A stretch of DNA of 64,000 bases from Zygnema circumcarinatum SAG 698-1b (lineage: Eukaryota; Plantae; Zygnematophyceae): assembly GCA_037447605.1 (NCBI GenBank), contig CM074811.1, forward strand, positions 2,976,001-3,040,000. The letters are read 5' to 3'. Numbering within the stretch: position 1 is the stretch's first letter; each line of letters starts with the position of its first letter. The position numbers and the translations under genes were made by a program. Of this stretch, positions 9,796 to 23,193 are shown in pieces. The notes under the pieces were generated by a model, which worked only from the letters and a program-made list of their open reading frames with translations, did no database searches and had not been told where the DNA came from.

Positions 9796-11244
9796 ATGAC
9801 GGAGGCGGCGATCCGCGCGAAGCAGGGCATGAAGTCGGTGAAGGAGATGCCCGTGCTGCAGGACGGGCCCCCGCCCGGCGGCTTCCCCGCCGTGCGCTAC
9901 GCGCGCAACATCCCCAATACGGGCCCTTCAGGCGTGGCCATAGCCCTCGTCGCTACGGGGATCATGGCGTGGGGGTTCTACCAAGTGGGGCAGGGGAACA
10001 TCAAACGCAGGTACATTCATGCTGCAGGAGTTTGGAATTGTCTGCGGAGGCGCTTTTTTTTTTTTTTTGGTTGTGGATGTTTTCTTTAGAAGTTAACCCT
10101 AGCCCTAATCCTAGCGTTAACCCTAATCCTAACCCTAACCCTAATCCCAACCCTAACCCTAACCCAACTCTAACTCTAACCATCACCCTAATCCTAATCC
10201 CAAAACTCGTTCTTGCCCGAAACCTTATCGAACTTTGATTCAGTTTTGATAAGTATCTCGACTGACTTATCTCAAATTAATACGTTTCCCGAAATAACAG
10301 CAACAAGCGCCCTTCGTCGCTGCTTTCCGTTAATACCATTTGCACTGCTTCCACCTCACGCTCACTTCACCTCAGAGTTAGGCTACTTTTAGGGTAAGGA
10401 ACGGTCAGGATTAGGTTATGGGGTCAGCGCAAGCTGGGGCAGTGGTTCAGAGCAGAGGGCTAGGGAGTAGGGTTGGAACAGTCATAATCAAATTTGAATT
10501 CAGTTTTCTTTCGAGCTAGGTTTAGGCTTAGGGTTACGGTTTAGAACGACTCGGATTTTAGAAATGCAGGAGAAAGGGAGAAGAGGAAGAGAGAGAAAGG
10601 ATAGAGAGCGAGAGAAGTGAGAGAGACAAGTGAGAGAAAGAGAGAGAATACTTCTGTTACATTTGACTCACTTTACGGAATTTTTGGATACATTCCTTGC
10701 CGTTTCTGATTTTCATTCAGCAGGGAAGCCGTATAAGCAAGCTTGTTCTCTCCGTTTTTTTAGTCGGCTACCTTCTGCTTTTGTCTCTGCTAATTCTGAT
10801 CCTTTGTTTGTTCGGATCCTGAACATGTTTGAATGTGTGCTTTGATGTTTGGAGCAGGGCTCTCAAGAAGGAGAAATTGGATGCAAGAGTCGCGATCCTA
10901 CCCTTGATTCAAGCTGAAGAAGATGCAAGGTGAAGAAGCTTTGCCTACGATGCATGACAAGTTCAACTCATCTCTGGGATTTCTTGTTATAAACATTGAT
11001 ATGGTTCAAAAGGTAAAAAATGACAATCTCTGGCATGCTCCGGTCCACAAGCACAGCTTGCTTACTATATGTTCTTTTTTTTTTTTCCTTTTTTGTTTCC
11101 AGATTTGTTCAAGCGAAGAAGAAGGCCCTGGACGAGGAGGCCAAGATTATGGCGAAGGTACCGGGATGGAAGGTGGGAGAGAACGTGTACAACTCGGGGC
11201 GGTGGATGCCTCCTTCAACTGGAAAGATAGAACTTCAATACTGA
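9796..11244 (+). CDS. NDUFA13: NADH dehydrogenase (complex I) subunit B16.6 / GRIM-19
   Basis: Exons 9796-10010, 10858-10929 and 11103-11244: [46 protein letters not shown]...[33 protein letters not shown]...[19 protein letters not shown]. Confidence 0.97.
10092..10200. repeat. Degenerate (CCCTAA)n telomere-like hexamer array in NDUFA13 intron 1
   Basis: AACCCTAGCCCTAATCCTAG...CCTAACCCTAACCCTAATCCCAACCCTAACCCTAAC. Confidence 0.85.
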
Positions 11245-12206
11245 AACCACATACTGAATGTTGTTGTCATACAACATAAACATTAACGGATATGCTCACA
11301 GACTCCTGACATTTCGTTCAAGTTCCACTACCAGGTGGCTGGCACTCGTGGATTCGGTCCAATATTGCACAGTGTATGTAGACTCAAAGCAGGGCCAGAT
11401 GCATCCGGCAGTGTGGGGGGGAGGGTGCCAAAGGACCGCTCTCTCCTTATCACAGTCTGCAGTTAAAACTTGCGGAAGTTCAAAGAGCCATTTATTAGGT
11501 AGACATAGAGAAGGGGAACTGATTTAATGGATTTTTTTTTTGTCATAGCTGATGGGTAGATGCAATTTCTGCTTTAACGGAGGTTCCATGCACAGCAGGG
11601 ACTCAGTTGTGGCACATTTGCTTGGGGTGTGTGGAAGGACGCCTCCAACCTTCTTTGTCAGCTCGATCGCTGCCGCAGTTTTCTACAAGAAACCTGGAAA
11701 GTAAAACGAGTGAATGTACGAAAAGTAAATGAGGAATAGACAGTAAAAAGCGCCCAGTCAAAATAAAATCCTTTTTCTCTCTTTTTCCAAATCTCAAATA
11801 AGGACCGCCCTGAGACGAGGCAGTTGAACGAAACGGCCATAGAACCCATCGAACGGCCTCTATCCAAACCGCAGCCTGAAAAAAATTCAGCATTAGCTGT
11901 CGACAGTTACAGTCAGTGCGAACAAATTTCGGAGCTTTCACTCATGTAGCGGCAGTTCCCCAATCTCTAAGCCGTCGGCGCATGCACGGAAAGGAAGGCG
12001 CGTGACTTCTGTCGACGCTGATGCTTCCTCTCCAACTGACGGCAGCCCTAAGCAGGGGCGTTTCGCCGCGTAACTAATCATTGGAAGCTTCCAGAGCTTC
12101 TCCTCTCACCTAAAGCTTTCAGCAGAAAATTGCCGGAGGCAGGGGGTGGTGCGAGAACAGGAGAGGCGGCTGGAGAGTAAGCCAAAGCGGTTGAAATTTT
12201 CTTCGT

Positions 12207-13847
12207 ATGCTGCGTAGTTGCATCCGCTCTCTCCGACCCTCATCTCTCCCTCTGTTTTCTACCTTTTCCGAGACTCCACCTTATCTCCCCCGCCGCACCC
12301 TCAACAAAATCAGCTGCATATTCAGTCCCAAGAAAGACCCACCCGCCATGGCTGCCCACTCAAGAGCTACGCAGCAGCACAAGCTCGCCTCCGCCCTCGC
12401 TCACGCCGCCATAGCCATCCCCTCGGCCGAGTCCCTGAAGTCCCTCTCCATGCAGGTGGAGCGTTTCCCTGTAGTTCTACTGGGCGAGGCCTCCCATGGA
12501 ACTTCGGACTTCTACCGCCTGCGGCAACACCTCTCCCGCTCCCTCCTGCGAGAGAGCTCTCCCGTCCGCTTCCGCTTCATCGCGGTGGAAGGCGATTGGC
12601 CCGCCTGCTACGCCGTGCACCGCTACGTGACACGTGGCATCGGCGGCTCGGCGGAGGCTGTTCTGAAGGCGGAGTTCAGGCGGTGGCCGCCATGGATGTG
12701 GGCCAACCGAGAAATGGTTGACTTTCTTGACTGGCTAAGGGCACATAACAGCCAGCTGGCGCCCTATGATAGGGTGGGTTTTTTTGGGCTGGACGTGTAT
12801 TCCCTGTACGAGTCGATTGAAGCTGTTGTGGAGGAGCTCGGCCACGTGGACCCTGCTATGGCGGAGGAGGCTAAAAGGCACTATGCATGCTTTGACAGAG
12901 TGGGAGGAGGGGATGAGAAAAGGTACACACGCTCTCTTTTATTTCGACCGGAGGGGTGTAGAGAGCAAGTGATTTCTGTGCTCAGGAAGCTTCTGCGAAA
13001 GAAGATGCCGGTACATGATGGGGATTCTGATGAAGATCCGAACGATCCCGACAGTCATATTTTCAACGCAAAGCAGAATGCAATAGTGGTGAAAGATGCG
13101 GAGAATTACTACAGAACTATGGTGTTGGGGGATGGGGAGTCGTGGAATGTGAGGGACTATCACATGGCGGATACGCTGCAACGGCTGATGCATGCTTACG
13201 CTAGCTGTGCAACGAAACGGGGCGGAACGGACACAAAGAAACCGGTGGGGGCGATAGTGTGGGCTCACAATACCCATGTGGGGGATCATAGGTTTTCGGA
13301 TATGATGAAGAGAGGGGAAATTACGATTGGGGGAGTGATGAGAGAAAGAGTGGGAGAGGAAAATGTGTGTCTTGTCGGGTTCGGAACATACAGAGGAAGT
13401 GTGATTGCTGCTCGGGATCAGTGGGGAGACCCTCCGAAAGTTCTGGAAGTTCCGCCGGCAGTTTCTGGAAGCTATGATGACGTCATGAATCGAGTGAGCC
13501 TGCAGCAGAAGATGCCTGTGTGGTATGTGATGTTCCGGAAAGATGACGTGGAAGTGAAGGAAAGGATGGGAGGAGAGAGCAAGGAAAAGGAAGGAGAGGG
13601 GAAAGAGGAGAAGGAGGAGAAGGAGGAGGTAGATTTCAGAAAGGAGTTTGGAGATTTTACGGCCGGGCAGCGTGCGATGGGTGTTGTTTACGATCCCAGA
13701 ATTGAGTTTTTGGGGAATTATGTTCCATGTCAAATTGTGAAGCGGTATGATTCGTTCGTTTTTGTTCATACCTCGAGAGCTTTGAAGCCCTTGGCAGCAA
13801 AAGTTGACCCTACGGAAGTGCCGGAGACGTACCCTACCGGCGTTTGA
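12207..13847 (+). CDS. Erythromycin esterase (Ere/ChaN-like) family protein, intronless, with a putative organellar transit peptide
   Basis: 546-aa uninterrupted ORF. Family motifs VVLLGEASHGTSDFY, FIAVEGDWP, WPPWMWANREM, GFFGLDVYSL, ESWNVRDYHM, VWAHNTHVGD and GQRAMGVVY. The N-terminal ~48 aa are Ser/Arg/Leu/Pro-rich and nearly free of acidic residues. Confidence 0.9.
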   Translation: MLRSCIRSLRPSSLPLFSTFSETPPYLPRRTLNKISCIFSPKKDPPAMAAHSRATQQHKLASALAHAAIAIPSAESLKSLSMQVERFPVVLLGEASHGTSDFYRLRQHLSRSLLRESSPVRFRFIAVEGDWPACYAVHRYVTRGIGGSAEAVLKAEFRRWPPWMWANREMVDFLDWLRAHNSQLAPYDRVGFFGLDVYSLYESIEAVVEELGHVDPAMAEEAKRHYACFDRVGGGDEKRYTRSLLFRPEGCREQVISVLRKLLRKKMPVHDGDSDEDPNDPDSHIFNAKQNAIVVKDAENYYRTMVLGDGESWNVRDYHMADTLQRLMHAYASCATKRGGTDTKKPVGAIVWAHNTHVGDHRFSDMMKRGEITIGGVMRERVGEENVCLVGFGTYRGSVIAARDQWGDPPKVLEVPPAVSGSYDDVMNRVSLQQKMPVWYVMFRKDDVEVKERMGGESKEKEGEGKEEKEEKEEVDFRKEFGDFTAGQRAMGVVYDPRIEFLGNYVPCQIVKRYDSFVFVHTSRALKPLAAKVDPTEVPETYPTGV

Positions 13848-15076
13848 TGAGAGTGAGAGTTCAGGGAATGAAGATGAGTGTTGGAAGAGAGAGAGCTGCG
13901 ACTCAGTTTTTCAGGTTTTCAAAGCTTTTAGAGCCTTTGGTGTCTTTAGGGTTAGTGTTTTGAGGGTTGTTGCGCAGAGTAGAATGTAGGGTTATGTGAT
14001 GGAATGCGAATGCTGTAAATAGTTCTGAACTTTCAGACATAAAGAGTTGGGGTTCGTTGAAAGGCTTACCGTTTTTAGGCCTATTCCCTTCCTTTGCTTC
14101 CTTTTGGATTTTAGAGGTGATCTTAAGGCTTAAGCAGTGAGTTTGTGTAACATAGCTGGAATGGAGATGGGTCTTCTGTACATAGCTTTAAGGAAAGAAA
14201 GAGATGAGGGGCTGATTTCTGCCGCTGGTGGGTGCAAGCACGAGTGGAAGGAGTTGGGAAAAGAACGAGAGAGAGAGGGGACGAGGAGAAGCAGGAAGGG
14301 AAAGAATGATACATGGAGAAAGGTAAAGACATTGAGAGAGTGAGCGAAAGATTAAGGGAGCTAGAAAGAGGGGACAGAGGGAGAGCAGAGGGAAAATGGG
14401 GGAAAGGAATGCACTGAGAAGGTTGCTTTTGAACCCATGGATGGACAAGAACTGACCGACTGTTGCCGAGTTTCCCACATGAATTGTCCGAATAAAATCT
14501 AGGACAGTACTTCCACGTTCCTTGGTCTTATTCATACTATGAGGCTCATGAAAAACTCAAACCACGTGACTCTTGACTAATGAGTTTTGCAGATAAGTCA
14601 CTGGCAATGACTAACATGACTCGTGTATGGCTACCTCAAGCCTGACCACAATATCATGTTTTACATTCTATACATGGCTTTCCCACAAACCCTCTCTGAA
14701 GGTGCGCCAAATTCGACCTTCCATACTTGTTAACATCATACTGTCCTTCATCAAAACACCACCCACTCCTATAGTAGACCTCAGCATTTTGATCTTGTAT
14801 AGGATAAATACCAATAAAGTATTCAACACCCAAACTGAACACTTTCCCCAAAACCGCACTCACCCAACTCATTCATAATAGATAGACCTCCATATTTTGA
14901 TCTTACATAGGATAAATACCAGCAACCAGGATAAATACCAGCAGCCAGCAGGAGCAGCCATTCCTTCTCCCTCCACAGAAAGAAAGCTTCAGCCCCCCCC
15001 CTCCCTCCCTCCCTCCCTCCTTNNNNNNNNNNCCCTCCCTCCCTCCCTCCCTCCCTCCCTCGGCCCATTTTTGGCC

Positions 15077-20115: not shown

Positions 20116-21000
20116 TATATGAGGACCCCCTAATATATTCGGAATTTATAACGCGGGCCATCCCTACTGCAGATGCGCTCCAAGACGAAACGGCAGATGG
20201 TGCCGACAAAAGTGCGGTCAACAGTGGACAAGACAAGTTAGGACATATCGGACACAACAAAAACGTACGAAAGGCATTTATAATGTATTATAAAAAAGGT
20301 ACTCTGCTATGATCAAAACTATCCTTCGTCAAGTACTCATTTTGGTAGCCAACGAGCGAACAGGAATGACGGATTTCAAGTCTGACGAGTCCTCCCGGAT
20401 GCGAATCTTATAAGATTCTGTTCAGCGCTACGCGCACGCCATTGGCCAATGGGCGGTACCCGTCGCACGAGCATCGCGTCTTGTGCGACACGTGGCAACA
20501 AAGTCAACGGGTAGCACTCGAAAAAGGATCGCTGAAGTTATTTTCCTTCAAATTATTTTCCATTAGGCCGTCTTCCGCGGCTGGCTCCCTCCTCCCTCCC
20601 TCCACAGGGCGGCGGCGGCGGCGGCGGAGGAGGAGGGGCCGCAGGGAGCCACGTGGAGCCCATCGGAAGGAGCGCCACTTGGGGGATGACACGTGGCGGT
20701 TCCAGGTGAGGATGGTCCCTTCCACGTGGCAATTCAGGGCGGCAAGGTAGCAGGGAGAGGGAATGCTTCCAGCCGCTTTGGGACGTCGCCATGGCGGCCA
20801 TGGTGTTGGGTCATGGCTGATTTAGGGTTTAGAGCTCACTGGTTGGGGGAGATAAAGGTCTAAAATATTGGATTATGGGGGAAAAATAATGGTGAAGAGA
20901 AACATGATGATGAACTCCCCATTACATGAATCCTCTGTTCATGTCGAATTTTTCCCTCCATTTTTTGGCCTCAACAGGTCCAAGCGAGAAGAGGGAAGCC

Positions 21001-23193
21001 ATGGGGGTCCTGGAACTGAGCCAAGAGCAAGTCCGTATTGCCACGGGGGGCTTCTCCGAAGCTTCTCTTTTGGGCAGTGGAGGCTTCGGAAAAGTGTACA
21101 TAGGAACCCTGTTTGGTCTGAAGGTGGCTGTGAAGAAAATTTCAGACTTTGACGGAACGCAGGAGTTTGAAAAGGAAGTGAATTCGCTGCAGGAGATGCG
21201 ACACCCCCATATTCTTCAACTTATCGGATGGGCCCCCTCCTGCATGTGCCTTGTGAGCGAATACATGGCGGGGGGCAGCCTGCATGCATGGCTGCGAGAT
21301 GCTGCAAAAAGGAGGGCTCTCACATGGAAGGACAGGATTAGAATATGCAGAGAAATGGCTTCCGCCATCTGCTACATGCATGCGAGGGAGGTTCTGCATC
21401 TCGACCTAAAACCGGCGAACATTCTTTTAGATTCTCACAAGGTCAGCAAAGTTGGGGATTTAGGGTTGGCCACGCTGTGCGGCGGATCATCTGAATTTCC
21501 CGTTTCGAAGCTAAGGGGAACTGCAGGATACATGGACCCTGAGATGCTTTCCAAAGGGCAAGTCAGTAAGCAGACGGATACATATGCGTTCGGGTTGATC
21601 ATGCTTCAGCTTCTTACTGGAATGACGAGAATTGAGGACTTGCACGGGCTATTGGGGGAGTTAGAAGGGGGGATACAAGGAGAGCAGCGTTTGAATAATT
21701 TCTTGCGAAGTTTGAGTCTTGCTTCAGAAAGCAAAAGCTTTTCGTCTGAAGTCAGCCTTCCCTCATGTGTTAGAGAACCCTCCTCTCCTCATTCTAACCC
21801 TACTTTCAGCTCTGACCGAAATCTATCTACTTCTCACTCTATGACTTGGCACGCGGAACTTCACCCTGATCGGAATTCTAACCCTAATTCGAACTTGAGT
21901 TTGAGTAACAACGACCGGTTACCATCCTCTCTGAATAGAACACCATGTTCTACAAGCAGGTGGTCGGAAAGTTCAACTGAGTTTGAATCCACCATTCAAA
22001 AGCTGCTGAAACGTTTGGACCCTGAAGCAGGAGACTGGCCAATAGAGAGGCTACAGCTGGCAGTGGGTTTGGCCCTGCTCTGTACAGAGAGGAAAAGAGA
22101 GCTTCGCCCTCGGATGGATGAACACATATTGACTGTTCTCCAGGAATTGGACGAGAGTTTTCAGAATGATGGAATAGGAAGAGGCAATGGAAACAATGCA
22201 GGAAATGACGAAGCAAATGCTTCATCAAATTCACAGAGTTTTGAAGCAGACGTGCTGCAAGACCCGTCCTGTAAAAAGGATCTTTCCAGGAGTGCATCGA
22301 AAGGTTTTGCAGAATGGTTCAAGGAAGCAGTCGATTTGGAACATCCCGAAGCTTTATTCAAGGTTGGGGAGTGTTTCTATGAAGGTAAAGGGACAGCCCA
22401 AAGCTTTGAAGTAGCCGTTGAGTGGTTCAAACGCGCCGTTACAAAGAGGCATCTTCCAGCCTTCCATATGCTTGGGAAATGCTATTTGAATGGGAAGGGG
22501 GTAGAAAGAGATGAGAATAAAGGAGTGACATTGTGTACATATGCTGCCCAAAGTGGATGGTGTCCTGCCCAGTACACTCTCGCCCATTGCTACGCAAATG
22601 GTCGAGGGGTAGTGAAGAGCGAAAGTGAAGCTTTTAAATGGTATGGCTGGGCAGCTCATCAGGGGCATCCCGAAAGTCAACATGAATATGCATCGATATG
22701 TTTGAAGCAAAAAAATTATGAAGTGGCGTTGCAATTCTTGTACAAAGCAGCTGTGCAGGGGTATGGGGACTCGCAGTATGCTCTCGGCATGCAGTTGAAG
22801 GGGAATAAAAAAAAAGGAGAGGATCAGTTGAGTCAGGCTATTAGGTGGCTTGAATGTGCTGCCTCACATGGACATGTACAGGCTCAGTTTCAGTTGGGAC
22901 GGATGTTCGCTGTGGGCTCTCAAGTAGATAAGAACATGGAAACGGCAGCAAAGTGGTACGGAATGGCGGCTCAGAACGGGCATGTTGGGTCGCAGATCGA
23001 GTATGGGTGGTTTTGTGAGAAGGGCATTGGGGTGGAGGTGGACTTTAAGAAGGCGGAGACTTTATATTGCCTCGCGGCGGCGAGTCCGGAGGGTTCAGGT
23101 CCTGCTACAGAGATGTTGGCAGGGCTGAGGAAGAGGGTAGCAAAGGAACAGAGTTCAGGTATGGAGAGGAGAAAAAGGGGAGGGTGGTTGTAA
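21001..23193 (+). CDS. RLK/Pelle-type cytoplasmic Ser/Thr kinase fused to ~7 Sel1-like repeats; single coding exon
   Basis: The ORF is open from 20926, but a polypyrimidine+CAG acceptor at ~20978 suggests the start is ATG 21001. Kinase motifs GSGGFGKVY, VAVK, HLDLKPANILLD, VGDLG and GTAGYMDPEM. Sel1 repeats such as AQYTLAHCYANGRGVVKSESEAFKWYGWAAHQGH run from about 22340 to 23090. Confidence 0.92.
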   Translation: MGVLELSQEQVRIATGGFSEASLLGSGGFGKVYIGTLFGLKVAVKKISDFDGTQEFEKEVNSLQEMRHPHILQLIGWAPSCMCLVSEYMAGGSLHAWLRDAAKRRALTWKDRIRICREMASAICYMHAREVLHLDLKPANILLDSHKVSKVGDLGLATLCGGSSEFPVSKLRGTAGYMDPEMLSKGQVSKQTDTYAFGLIMLQLLTGMTRIEDLHGLLGELEGGIQGEQRLNNFLRSLSLASESKSFSSEVSLPSCVREPSSPHSNPTFSSDRNLSTSHSMTWHAELHPDRNSNPNSNLSLSNNDRLPSSLNRTPCSTSRWSESSTEFESTIQKLLKRLDPEAGDWPIERLQLAVGLALLCTERKRELRPRMDEHILTVLQELDESFQNDGIGRGNGNNAGNDEANASSNSQSFEADVLQDPSCKKDLSRSASKGFAEWFKEAVDLEHPEALFKVGECFYEGKGTAQSFEVAVEWFKRAVTKRHLPAFHMLGKCYLNGKGVERDENKGVTLCTYAAQSGWCPAQYTLAHCYANGRGVVKSESEAFKWYGWAAHQGHPESQHEYASICLKQKNYEVALQFLYKAAVQGYGDSQYALGMQLKGNKKKGEDQLSQAIRWLECAASHGHVQAQFQLGRMFAVGSQVDKNMETAAKWYGMAAQNGHVGSQIEYGWFCEKGIGVEVDFKKAETLYCLAAASPEGSGPATEMLAGLRKRVAKEQSSGMERRKRGGWL

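Follow-up and report, generated by a model that had tools for sequence, protein, structure and literature searches.

The stretch of DNA considered here comprises 64,000 nucleotides of the streptophyte alga Zygnema circumcarinatum SAG 698-1b (assembly GCA_037447605.1, contig CM074811.1, positions 2,976,001 to 3,040,000 of the forward strand) and is referred to as the window; coordinates are counted from its first nucleotide. It carries an open reading frame (ORF) for a protein of the erythromycin esterase (Ere) superfamily, called the Ere ORF in what follows, which lies downstream of the gene for NDUFA13 (GRIM-19). A preliminary description, made from the sequence alone, took this ORF for a horizontally acquired, organelle-targeted hydrolase that possibly protects organellar ribosomes from microbial macrolides. 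The features of the locus are collected in Table 1.

Table 1. Features of the Ere locus and of the neighbouring NDUFA13 gene (residue numbers refer to the Ere protein).
Feature	Position	Strand	Basis
NDUFA13 (GRIM-19), penultimate exon	10856..10929	+	Pfam GRIM-19, E 3e-4; splice in RNA contigs of 4 runs
NDUFA13, GT-AG intron	10930..11102	+	Spliced out of RNA contigs
NDUFA13, final exon including stop	11103..11245	+	Pfam GRIM-19, E 2.5e-10
NDUFA13 3' untranslated region (UTR) and intergenic region or Ere 5' leader	11246..12206	+	Complete RNA-contig cover
In-frame stop upstream, capping the Ere ORF	12192..12194	+	
Ere-superfamily (PF05139) hydrolase coding sequence, intronless, 546 aa	12207..13847	+	ORF, Pfam, RNA contigs, AlphaFold (AF2) model of mean pLDDT 86.6
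N-terminal extension of 47 codons, candidate organellar presequence; 67% pyrimidine leader; first ATG in weak context (cgtATGc)	12207..12347	+	
Met48 ATG in strong context (gccATGg), possible alternative or true start	12348..12350	+	
GEASHG, residues 93-98 (Glu94 and predicted catalytic base His97; EreC E47/H50)	12483..12500	+	Conserved in alignments A1 and A2
AVEGD, residues 126-130 (Glu128; EreC E78)	12582..12596	+	Conserved in alignments
Acidic insert (surface loop of low confidence), residues 265-283	12999..13055	+	Not in homologues; pLDDT 66-69
NVRD (Arg316; EreC R261, transition-state stabiliser)	13146..13157	+	HMMER alignment to EreC, chain-numbering offset inferred; invariant in A1
AHNTH, residues 353-357 (His354, corresponding to EreC H289; His357)	13263..13277	+	Alignments
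Low-complexity insert rich in Glu and Lys (residues ~450-476), a purine tract in the DNA	13554..13634	+	Alignment, model

The stretch is present in contigs from seven public runs belonging to three studies. Contigs from four of these runs were aligned to positions 10700-14600, and they are known to be derived from RNA because the intron of NDUFA13, the exons of which were each queried singly against Pfam, is skipped in all four. The Ere ORF starts 960 bp downstream of this spliced gene. Single contigs from two independent studies (run X3 of study P3 and run X6 of study P2) match the genome continuously from the NDUFA13 splice junction to past 14600, and a contig of run X2 spans 11102 to beyond 14600; all three cross the Ere ORF with zero gaps and zero mismatches, and the ORF is thus unspliced. 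Since these contigs span both genes independently of the assembly, the Ere ORF is continuous with a spliced nuclear gene; it is a genuine, transcribed nuclear gene, and contamination is excluded. Linkage to NDUFA13, which the preliminary description had proposed as a check on contamination, is thereby established, as is its intronless coding sequence of 1.6 kb, which runs colinear and gap-free through the same contigs that splice NDUFA13. Its placing of the gene among neighbours with 2-15 introns holds in part: introns were verified for NDUFA13 only, and the window also contains an uninterrupted 755-aa ORF (20926-23193), which encodes a kinase. The kinase and NDUFA13 are both plant-like. The absence of introns is in any case typical of the family, given that a fern homologue is intronless too, and is a weak signal when taken alone.

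The contigs are uninformative on strand, transcript ends and local depth, and all of them end near 14860-14890. In run X1, a contig of 2,058 nt with a mean depth of 1,417 (a per-contig mean, and so a hint only) begins abruptly at 12806, within the Ere ORF, and reaches ~14863. This boundary could be due to an overlapping transcript (e.g. the 3' UTR of a convergent gene), to an internal start or to library bias.

Family, fold and prokaryotic relatives

The protein matches the Pfam family PF05139 (Erythro_esteras) with 335.9 bits (cut-off 26.4; E 5.7e-100), over profile positions 6-357 of 358. The GEASHG, AVEGD and AHNTH motifs, already recognised in the preliminary description, are present and fall in conserved columns of the prokaryotic and plant alignments. 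The catalytic residues of EreC and their roles are described (E47, H50, E78, R261 and H289; PMC7979712), and all five are matched, by E94, H97, E128, R316 and H354 respectively, at conserved alignment positions. With these five residues conserved, hydrolysis by a His-activated water is the natural mechanism to propose, and the protein is most likely a metal-independent ester or lactone hydrolase, like EreC and Bcr136.

An AF2 model built from 99 sequences (mean predicted local distance difference test score (pLDDT) 86.6, predicted template modelling (TM) score 0.86) has the two-lobe fold of Ere and Bcr135. Foldseek comparison of the model returns Bcr136 (TM score 0.82), Bcr135 (0.80) and EreC (0.70), at 13-17% identity and with E-values down to 3e-22. 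Bcr136 and Bcr135 of Bacillus cereus (PDB 2QGM; 3B55/2RAD), which are generic esterases (PMC6109786), are also the best sequence matches in the PDB and share the same conserved Glu/His/Glu/His. They differ in being Firmicute proteins of only ~16-17% identity that lack a eukaryotic leader and inserts; the "succinoglycan biosynthesis" label that they carry is an annotation only.

Homologues are abundant in prokaryotes: 7,733 were retrieved by word search and 7,245 by exhaustive search, the best being 40-51% identical. Our surveys of both prokaryotes and plants rest on the best 120-150 matches listed. The named relatives are bacterial or archaeal (Bdellovibrionia/Bacteriovorax, Gemmatimonadaceae, Thermoleophilaceae, Thermoproteota/Nitrosocosmicus and Halobaculum), no self match or close orthologue was found among ~15 billion proteins, and a feature search of the Atlas returned bacterial Ere clusters only. 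On these sequence matches the gene is a member of a very large, uncharacterised prokaryotic subfamily of proteins of ~440 aa, distributed among Bdellovibrionota, Gemmatimonadota, Nitrososphaerales, haloarchaea and others.

Members of this subfamily are often found in company. Among the 150 best cluster representatives, 20 are fusion proteins at least 600 aa long in which the Ere domain is C-terminal, preceded by Pribosyltran domains with or without dienelactone hydrolase (DLH)/Abhydrolase domains, according to precomputed Pfam labels. In Nitrosocosmicus (locus L003) a stand-alone phosphoribosyltransferase (PRTase) gene is followed by the Ere-like gene, with a DLH gene nearby, and in protein P0031 PRTase, DLH and Ere are fused in one chain. 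The module, which combines a type-I PRTase with DLH/Abhydrolase_11, recurs (L003:3003-7368; L004:6001-8589; P0031 and P0382-P0388). The Ere domains of these modules (P0031, P0382 and Nitrosocosmicus L003) are 40-45% identical to the Zygnema protein and are its nearest prokaryotic kin; the alga differs in having the Ere domain alone, and neither a PRTase or DLH partner nor a further Ere fragment or a copy of the leader was found in the 64-kb window. A literature search for Ere together with PRTase and dienelactone hydrolase found nothing relevant. In PADLOC the Zygnema protein is unmatched and the module fits no catalogued defence system, the fusion proteins alone showing a generic PRTase similarity (ShosT). 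The conserved association with PRTase and DLH, and the presence of the subfamily in Nitrosocosmicus and Halobaculum, argue that its native role is not macrolide resistance.

Ancestry of the streptophyte genes

The gene is an old resident of its genome and not a recent arrival, because its composition is that of host genes. Its GC content at third codon positions (GC3) is 0.60, between the 0.50 and 0.64 of two host ORFs in the window, the DNA of its Glu/Lys insert is a purine tract such as occur throughout the window, and no poly(A) remnant is found downstream of the ORF in the window. Composition shifts sharply within the ORF, GC3 being 0.73 at 12351-12900 and 0.53 after that, with a marked excess of G and of purines in the 3' half and its UTR (GC skew +0.42). 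An antisense ORF of 276 aa (12939-13769) probably results from this excess of purines.

In a first tree, made with FastTree, the nearest named neighbour of the Zygnema protein was a protein of the fern Ceratopteris richardii encoded on a 136-Mb chromosome. Searching with the Ceratopteris sequence led to the fern Adiantum (72% identical to Ceratopteris), the lycophyte Selaginella moellendorffii (48% identical to Ceratopteris) and a 1.4-kb transcript contig, P0278, whose Ere-like product of 444 aa is sister to the fern sequences and has the same insert (L006 and L007; Logan contigs SRR8475539 and SRR21021229). The plant loci are L009:4001-5464 for Ceratopteris, L008:5001-6414 for Selaginella and P0277 for Adiantum. 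The three named proteins (SELMODRAFT_120707, KAH7279848 and L7F22_058319 for Selaginella, Ceratopteris and Adiantum, respectively), which are labelled "Erythromycin esterase" in UniRef, belong to the same subfamily as the Zygnema protein and are 42-45% identical to it overall (alignments A2/A3), with 50% identity for a Ceratopteris fragment over the matched stretch. The land-plant genes are likewise nuclear and intronless or nearly so, the fern gene having no intron and the span of the Selaginella gene implying one of ~49 bp. They differ from the Zygnema gene in lacking an N-terminal extension and the Glu/Lys insert, in the different insert of the ferns, and in forming a clade of their own in a group of Bdellovibrionia type. 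No further named plants were among the matches listed in a search with a profile of the plant sequences, and a literature search on Ere in Klebsormidium or land plants found nothing relevant.

Trees were inferred under the site-heterogeneous LG+C20 posterior mean site frequency (PMSF) model from sets of 65 and 44 sequences. The land-plant quartet of Selaginella, Ceratopteris, Adiantum and P0278 forms a clade within the Bdellovibrionia-type group, with support of 98 in the Shimodaira-Hasegawa-like approximate likelihood ratio test (SH-aLRT) in the 65-row tree and of 98/88 in the careful 44-row tree. The nesting of this nuclear fern and lycophyte clade among Bdellovibrionia/Bacteriovorax-type sequences makes it a candidate for an old transfer into vascular plants or streptophytes in its own right; seed plants appear to be without the gene in these searches. 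The Zygnema protein attaches by a long branch, of 1.05-1.32 substitutions per site, to the internode between two big prokaryotic groups. Its neighbours are prokaryotic or metagenomic except for a few vascular plants, and its exact position is unstable; in the 44-row tree it is excluded from the Bdellovibrionia-type group at 76% bootstrap only. The insert common to the ferns and P0278 is missing from the Zygnema protein, and its signature motifs are a mixture from both prokaryotic groups.

Prokaryotic ancestry is well supported by the tree and by the 40-51% identity of the best relatives, and to this extent the horizontal acquisition previously proposed stands. The family is not confined to the alga, as Selaginella and two ferns carry homologues. 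Vertical inheritance of orthologues across green plants had been named as the outcome that would speak against acquisition by the alga, and the evidence goes part of the way towards it, a single streptophyte clade not being rejected by approximately unbiased (AU) tests on the trees (p 0.242 and 0.24).

A single ancient transfer would explain this distribution if a Bdellovibrionota-like donor gave the gene to the streptophyte lineage before the divergence of land plants, and if seed plants lost it but the alga, lycophytes and ferns retained it, the algal copy being a fast-evolving orthologue or paralogue. We consider this scenario a strong contender, though falling short of an even chance. It agrees with the position of the land-plant clade, with the joining of the alga to the same group at 99/91 in the careful tree and its weakly supported exclusion from that group, with the pairing of alga and fern by FastTree, with the AU tests and with the intronless state of the fern gene. 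The site-heterogeneous model, however, never groups the alga with the land plants, and the sequences themselves differ in the insert, the alga also sharing several motifs with the other prokaryotic group. Moreover, the land plants score 61-87 bits higher on the hidden Markov model (HMM) of group B than on that of the other group, the alga having no such preference, and no bryophyte, seed-plant or other algal member is among the matches listed.

The N-terminal extension

The preliminary description also reported a Ser/Arg-rich extension of about 48 residues before a second methionine, and regarded it as an organellar targeting peptide. The extension is real and has 47 residues, with Met48 at 12348; in composition it is basic and Ser/Pro-rich. 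It has a net charge of +6, 8 Ser, 3 Thr, 8 Pro and 2 acidic residues, with three Arg in the first 10 positions, and its start is amphipathic (hydrophobic moment 0.78 for residues 1-11). In the AF2 model it is disordered and lies outside the fold: block means of pLDDT are 40-48 for residues 1-40, and most of residues 1-38 score below 50. The domain's first helix runs from residue 47, and prokaryotic homologues begin near Met48. An ATG-initiated open extension of at least 47 codons arises in 0.9-2.8% of local dinucleotide shuffles, and the extension is therefore unlikely to be accidental. We put organellar targeting at close to an even chance, or slightly below it. There is no ATG between 12207 and 12348 apart from the two starts, so leaky scanning could give both a targeted and an untargeted form.

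It is also possible, and in our judgement a serious prospect if somewhat less probable than targeting itself, that the protein is cytosolic and is translated from Met48, the supposed targeting peptide being nothing other than open reading through a CT-rich 5' leader. The start contexts agree with this, that of Met48 being strong and that of Met1 weak, as do the beginning of the fold and of the prokaryotic homologues at about residue 47, the 67% pyrimidine content of the leader and the absence of the extension from all homologues, land plants included. Three upstream ORFs, with ATGs at 11944, 11982 and 12021 (1, 7 and 18 codons), lie in RNA-covered sequence between the 3' end of NDUFA13 (~11759) and the Ere start; they too would speak for this reading, but are relevant only if transcription of the Ere gene begins that far upstream. 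Against an exclusively cytosolic protein are the rarity of such extensions in shuffled sequence and the presequence-like make-up of this one, with its early arginines, positive charge, amphipathic start and only two acidic residues. In addition, the first ATG lies within the RNA contigs, and under the scanning model the first AUG would be used at least partly.

Function, rival readings and significance

The reading that we favour, with a probability of roughly 0.6, is that the locus contains a genuine nuclear, transcribed and prokaryote-derived gene for a two-lobed hydrolase of the Ere superfamily, belonging to an uncharacterised subfamily and modified in its host. A prokaryotic gene would have become a nuclear gene of a streptophyte alga in an old transfer, and would then have gained an N-terminal extension of 47 codons and low-complexity inserts of the host type. 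Should translation begin at the first AUG, which has a weak context, the extension would act as a mitochondrial or plastid presequence, and leaky scanning to the strong-context Met48 would additionally provide a cytosolic form. What we infer here is the enzymatic activity, the class of substrate, the targeting and the use of two starts.

Several findings weigh against this reading. The subfamily is biochemically uncharacterised throughout, and only small separate contigs, at a depth of 0-10, represent the 5' third of the Ere ORF in run X1 (study P1). The placement of the alga flips with sampling, from the Gemmatimonadota/archaeal side in the 65-row tree to the Bdellovibrionia side (99/91) in the 44-row tree, and the HMMs of the two groups score it nearly equally, at 521 and 510 bits, when true members differ by ~135 bits. 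As to the extension, it occurs in none of the aligned prokaryotic or land-plant sequences, a CT-rich leader would read as Ser, Pro and Leu in any frame, and the RNA cover of the leader may represent NDUFA13 read-through only.

A more elaborate version holds that the alga acquired its gene independently of lycophytes and ferns, that the presequence was built de novo from the CT-rich leader, and that dual isoforms, from Met1 in an organelle and from Met48 in the cytosol, detoxify a bacterial ester or lactone, possibly macrolides. We think this combination unlikely.

Macrolide hydrolysis, on which the preliminary description built its function, finds no support in the comparisons made. The conserved motifs are uninformative about macrolides: Bcr136 has the same catalytic residues and does not hydrolyse them (PMC6109786). 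The Zygnema protein has no match at E<=0.01 to the NCBIfam models of EreA (NF000208), EreB (NF000209) and EreD (NF000516), the cut-offs of which are 750-800 bits, and its nearest prokaryotic and fern kin reach 22-34 bits on the NCBIfam Ere models, over the N-terminal motif only. Queried alone against PDB sequences, the protein matches Bcr135 and Bcr136 only; a profile of the subfamily aligns with most or all of the length of these two (Bcr136 E 1e-31, Bcr135 E 4e-27), whereas EreC is matched over the GExxHG region only (residues 48-117, E 4e-6). With EreA, EreB, EreC and EreD the protein thus has in common the superfamily, the fold and counterparts of the five catalytic residues; it differs from them in the unmatched models, in the ~14% identity to EreC and in a sequence alignment confined to the N-terminal motif. 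Judged by these profiles, the gene lies outside the macrolide-resistance clade EreA-D, and its natural substrate is probably not a macrolide.

We also think it unlikely that the protein is a macrolide esterase sent to plastids or mitochondria to shield their ribosomes from bacterial macrolides. The intact catalytic residues and the presequence-like extension would suit such a role, and the concept is workable, as bacterial ereB serves as a chloroplast marker giving erythromycin resistance in the green alga Dunaliella (PMC6315944); a similar role has been proposed for a haptophyte gene (PMC4580454). Protection of organelles is therefore possible in principle, but only given a true macrolide esterase, and besides the greater nearness to Bcr136, the prokaryotic kin sit with PRTase and DLH genes rather than resistance genes, and occur in the archaea Nitrosocosmicus and Halobaculum. 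It is less probable again that the gene is a processed retrocopy of a reported intron-containing Ere-like gene elsewhere in the genome: this copy is indeed intronless, but it has no poly(A) remnant downstream, and the intronless fern homologue makes the lack of introns likely to be ancestral. Bacterial contamination or mis-assembly, which a bacterial-type, intronless protein gene might suggest, is rejected on the continuity of the RNA contigs of two studies with the spliced NDUFA13 junction, and is opposed also by the host-like composition, the host-type purine-tract inserts and the eukaryote-style leader and extension.

Genes of the Ere family have been read as antibiotic defence in other algal lineages, namely in the haptophyte Chrysochromulina tobin (Ctob_004084; PMC4580454), the dinoflagellate Fugacium kawagutii, where the gene is among putative bacterium-derived genes (PMC11453091), and the pelagophyte Aureococcus anophagefferens (PMC10756674). 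They too are bacterial-type Ere genes in nuclear genomes, compared here by description only, and putative horizontal transfer is stated for that of Fugacium alone. The plant and algal copies described here fall in the huge PRTase-associated subfamily, outside the antibiotic-resistance clade, and we suggest that an "erythromycin esterase" annotation in algal and plant genomes should not be read as antibiotic defence.

The new points are modest, and consist of a possible self-made presequence and the placement of the plant and algal copies in the PRTase-linked subfamily. Provided that the presequence works, the gene would exemplify the gain of organelle targeting by a transferred gene from its own leader. 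With Zygnema, a streptophyte alga is added to the eukaryotes that retain a hydrolase of the Ere superfamily derived from prokaryotes.

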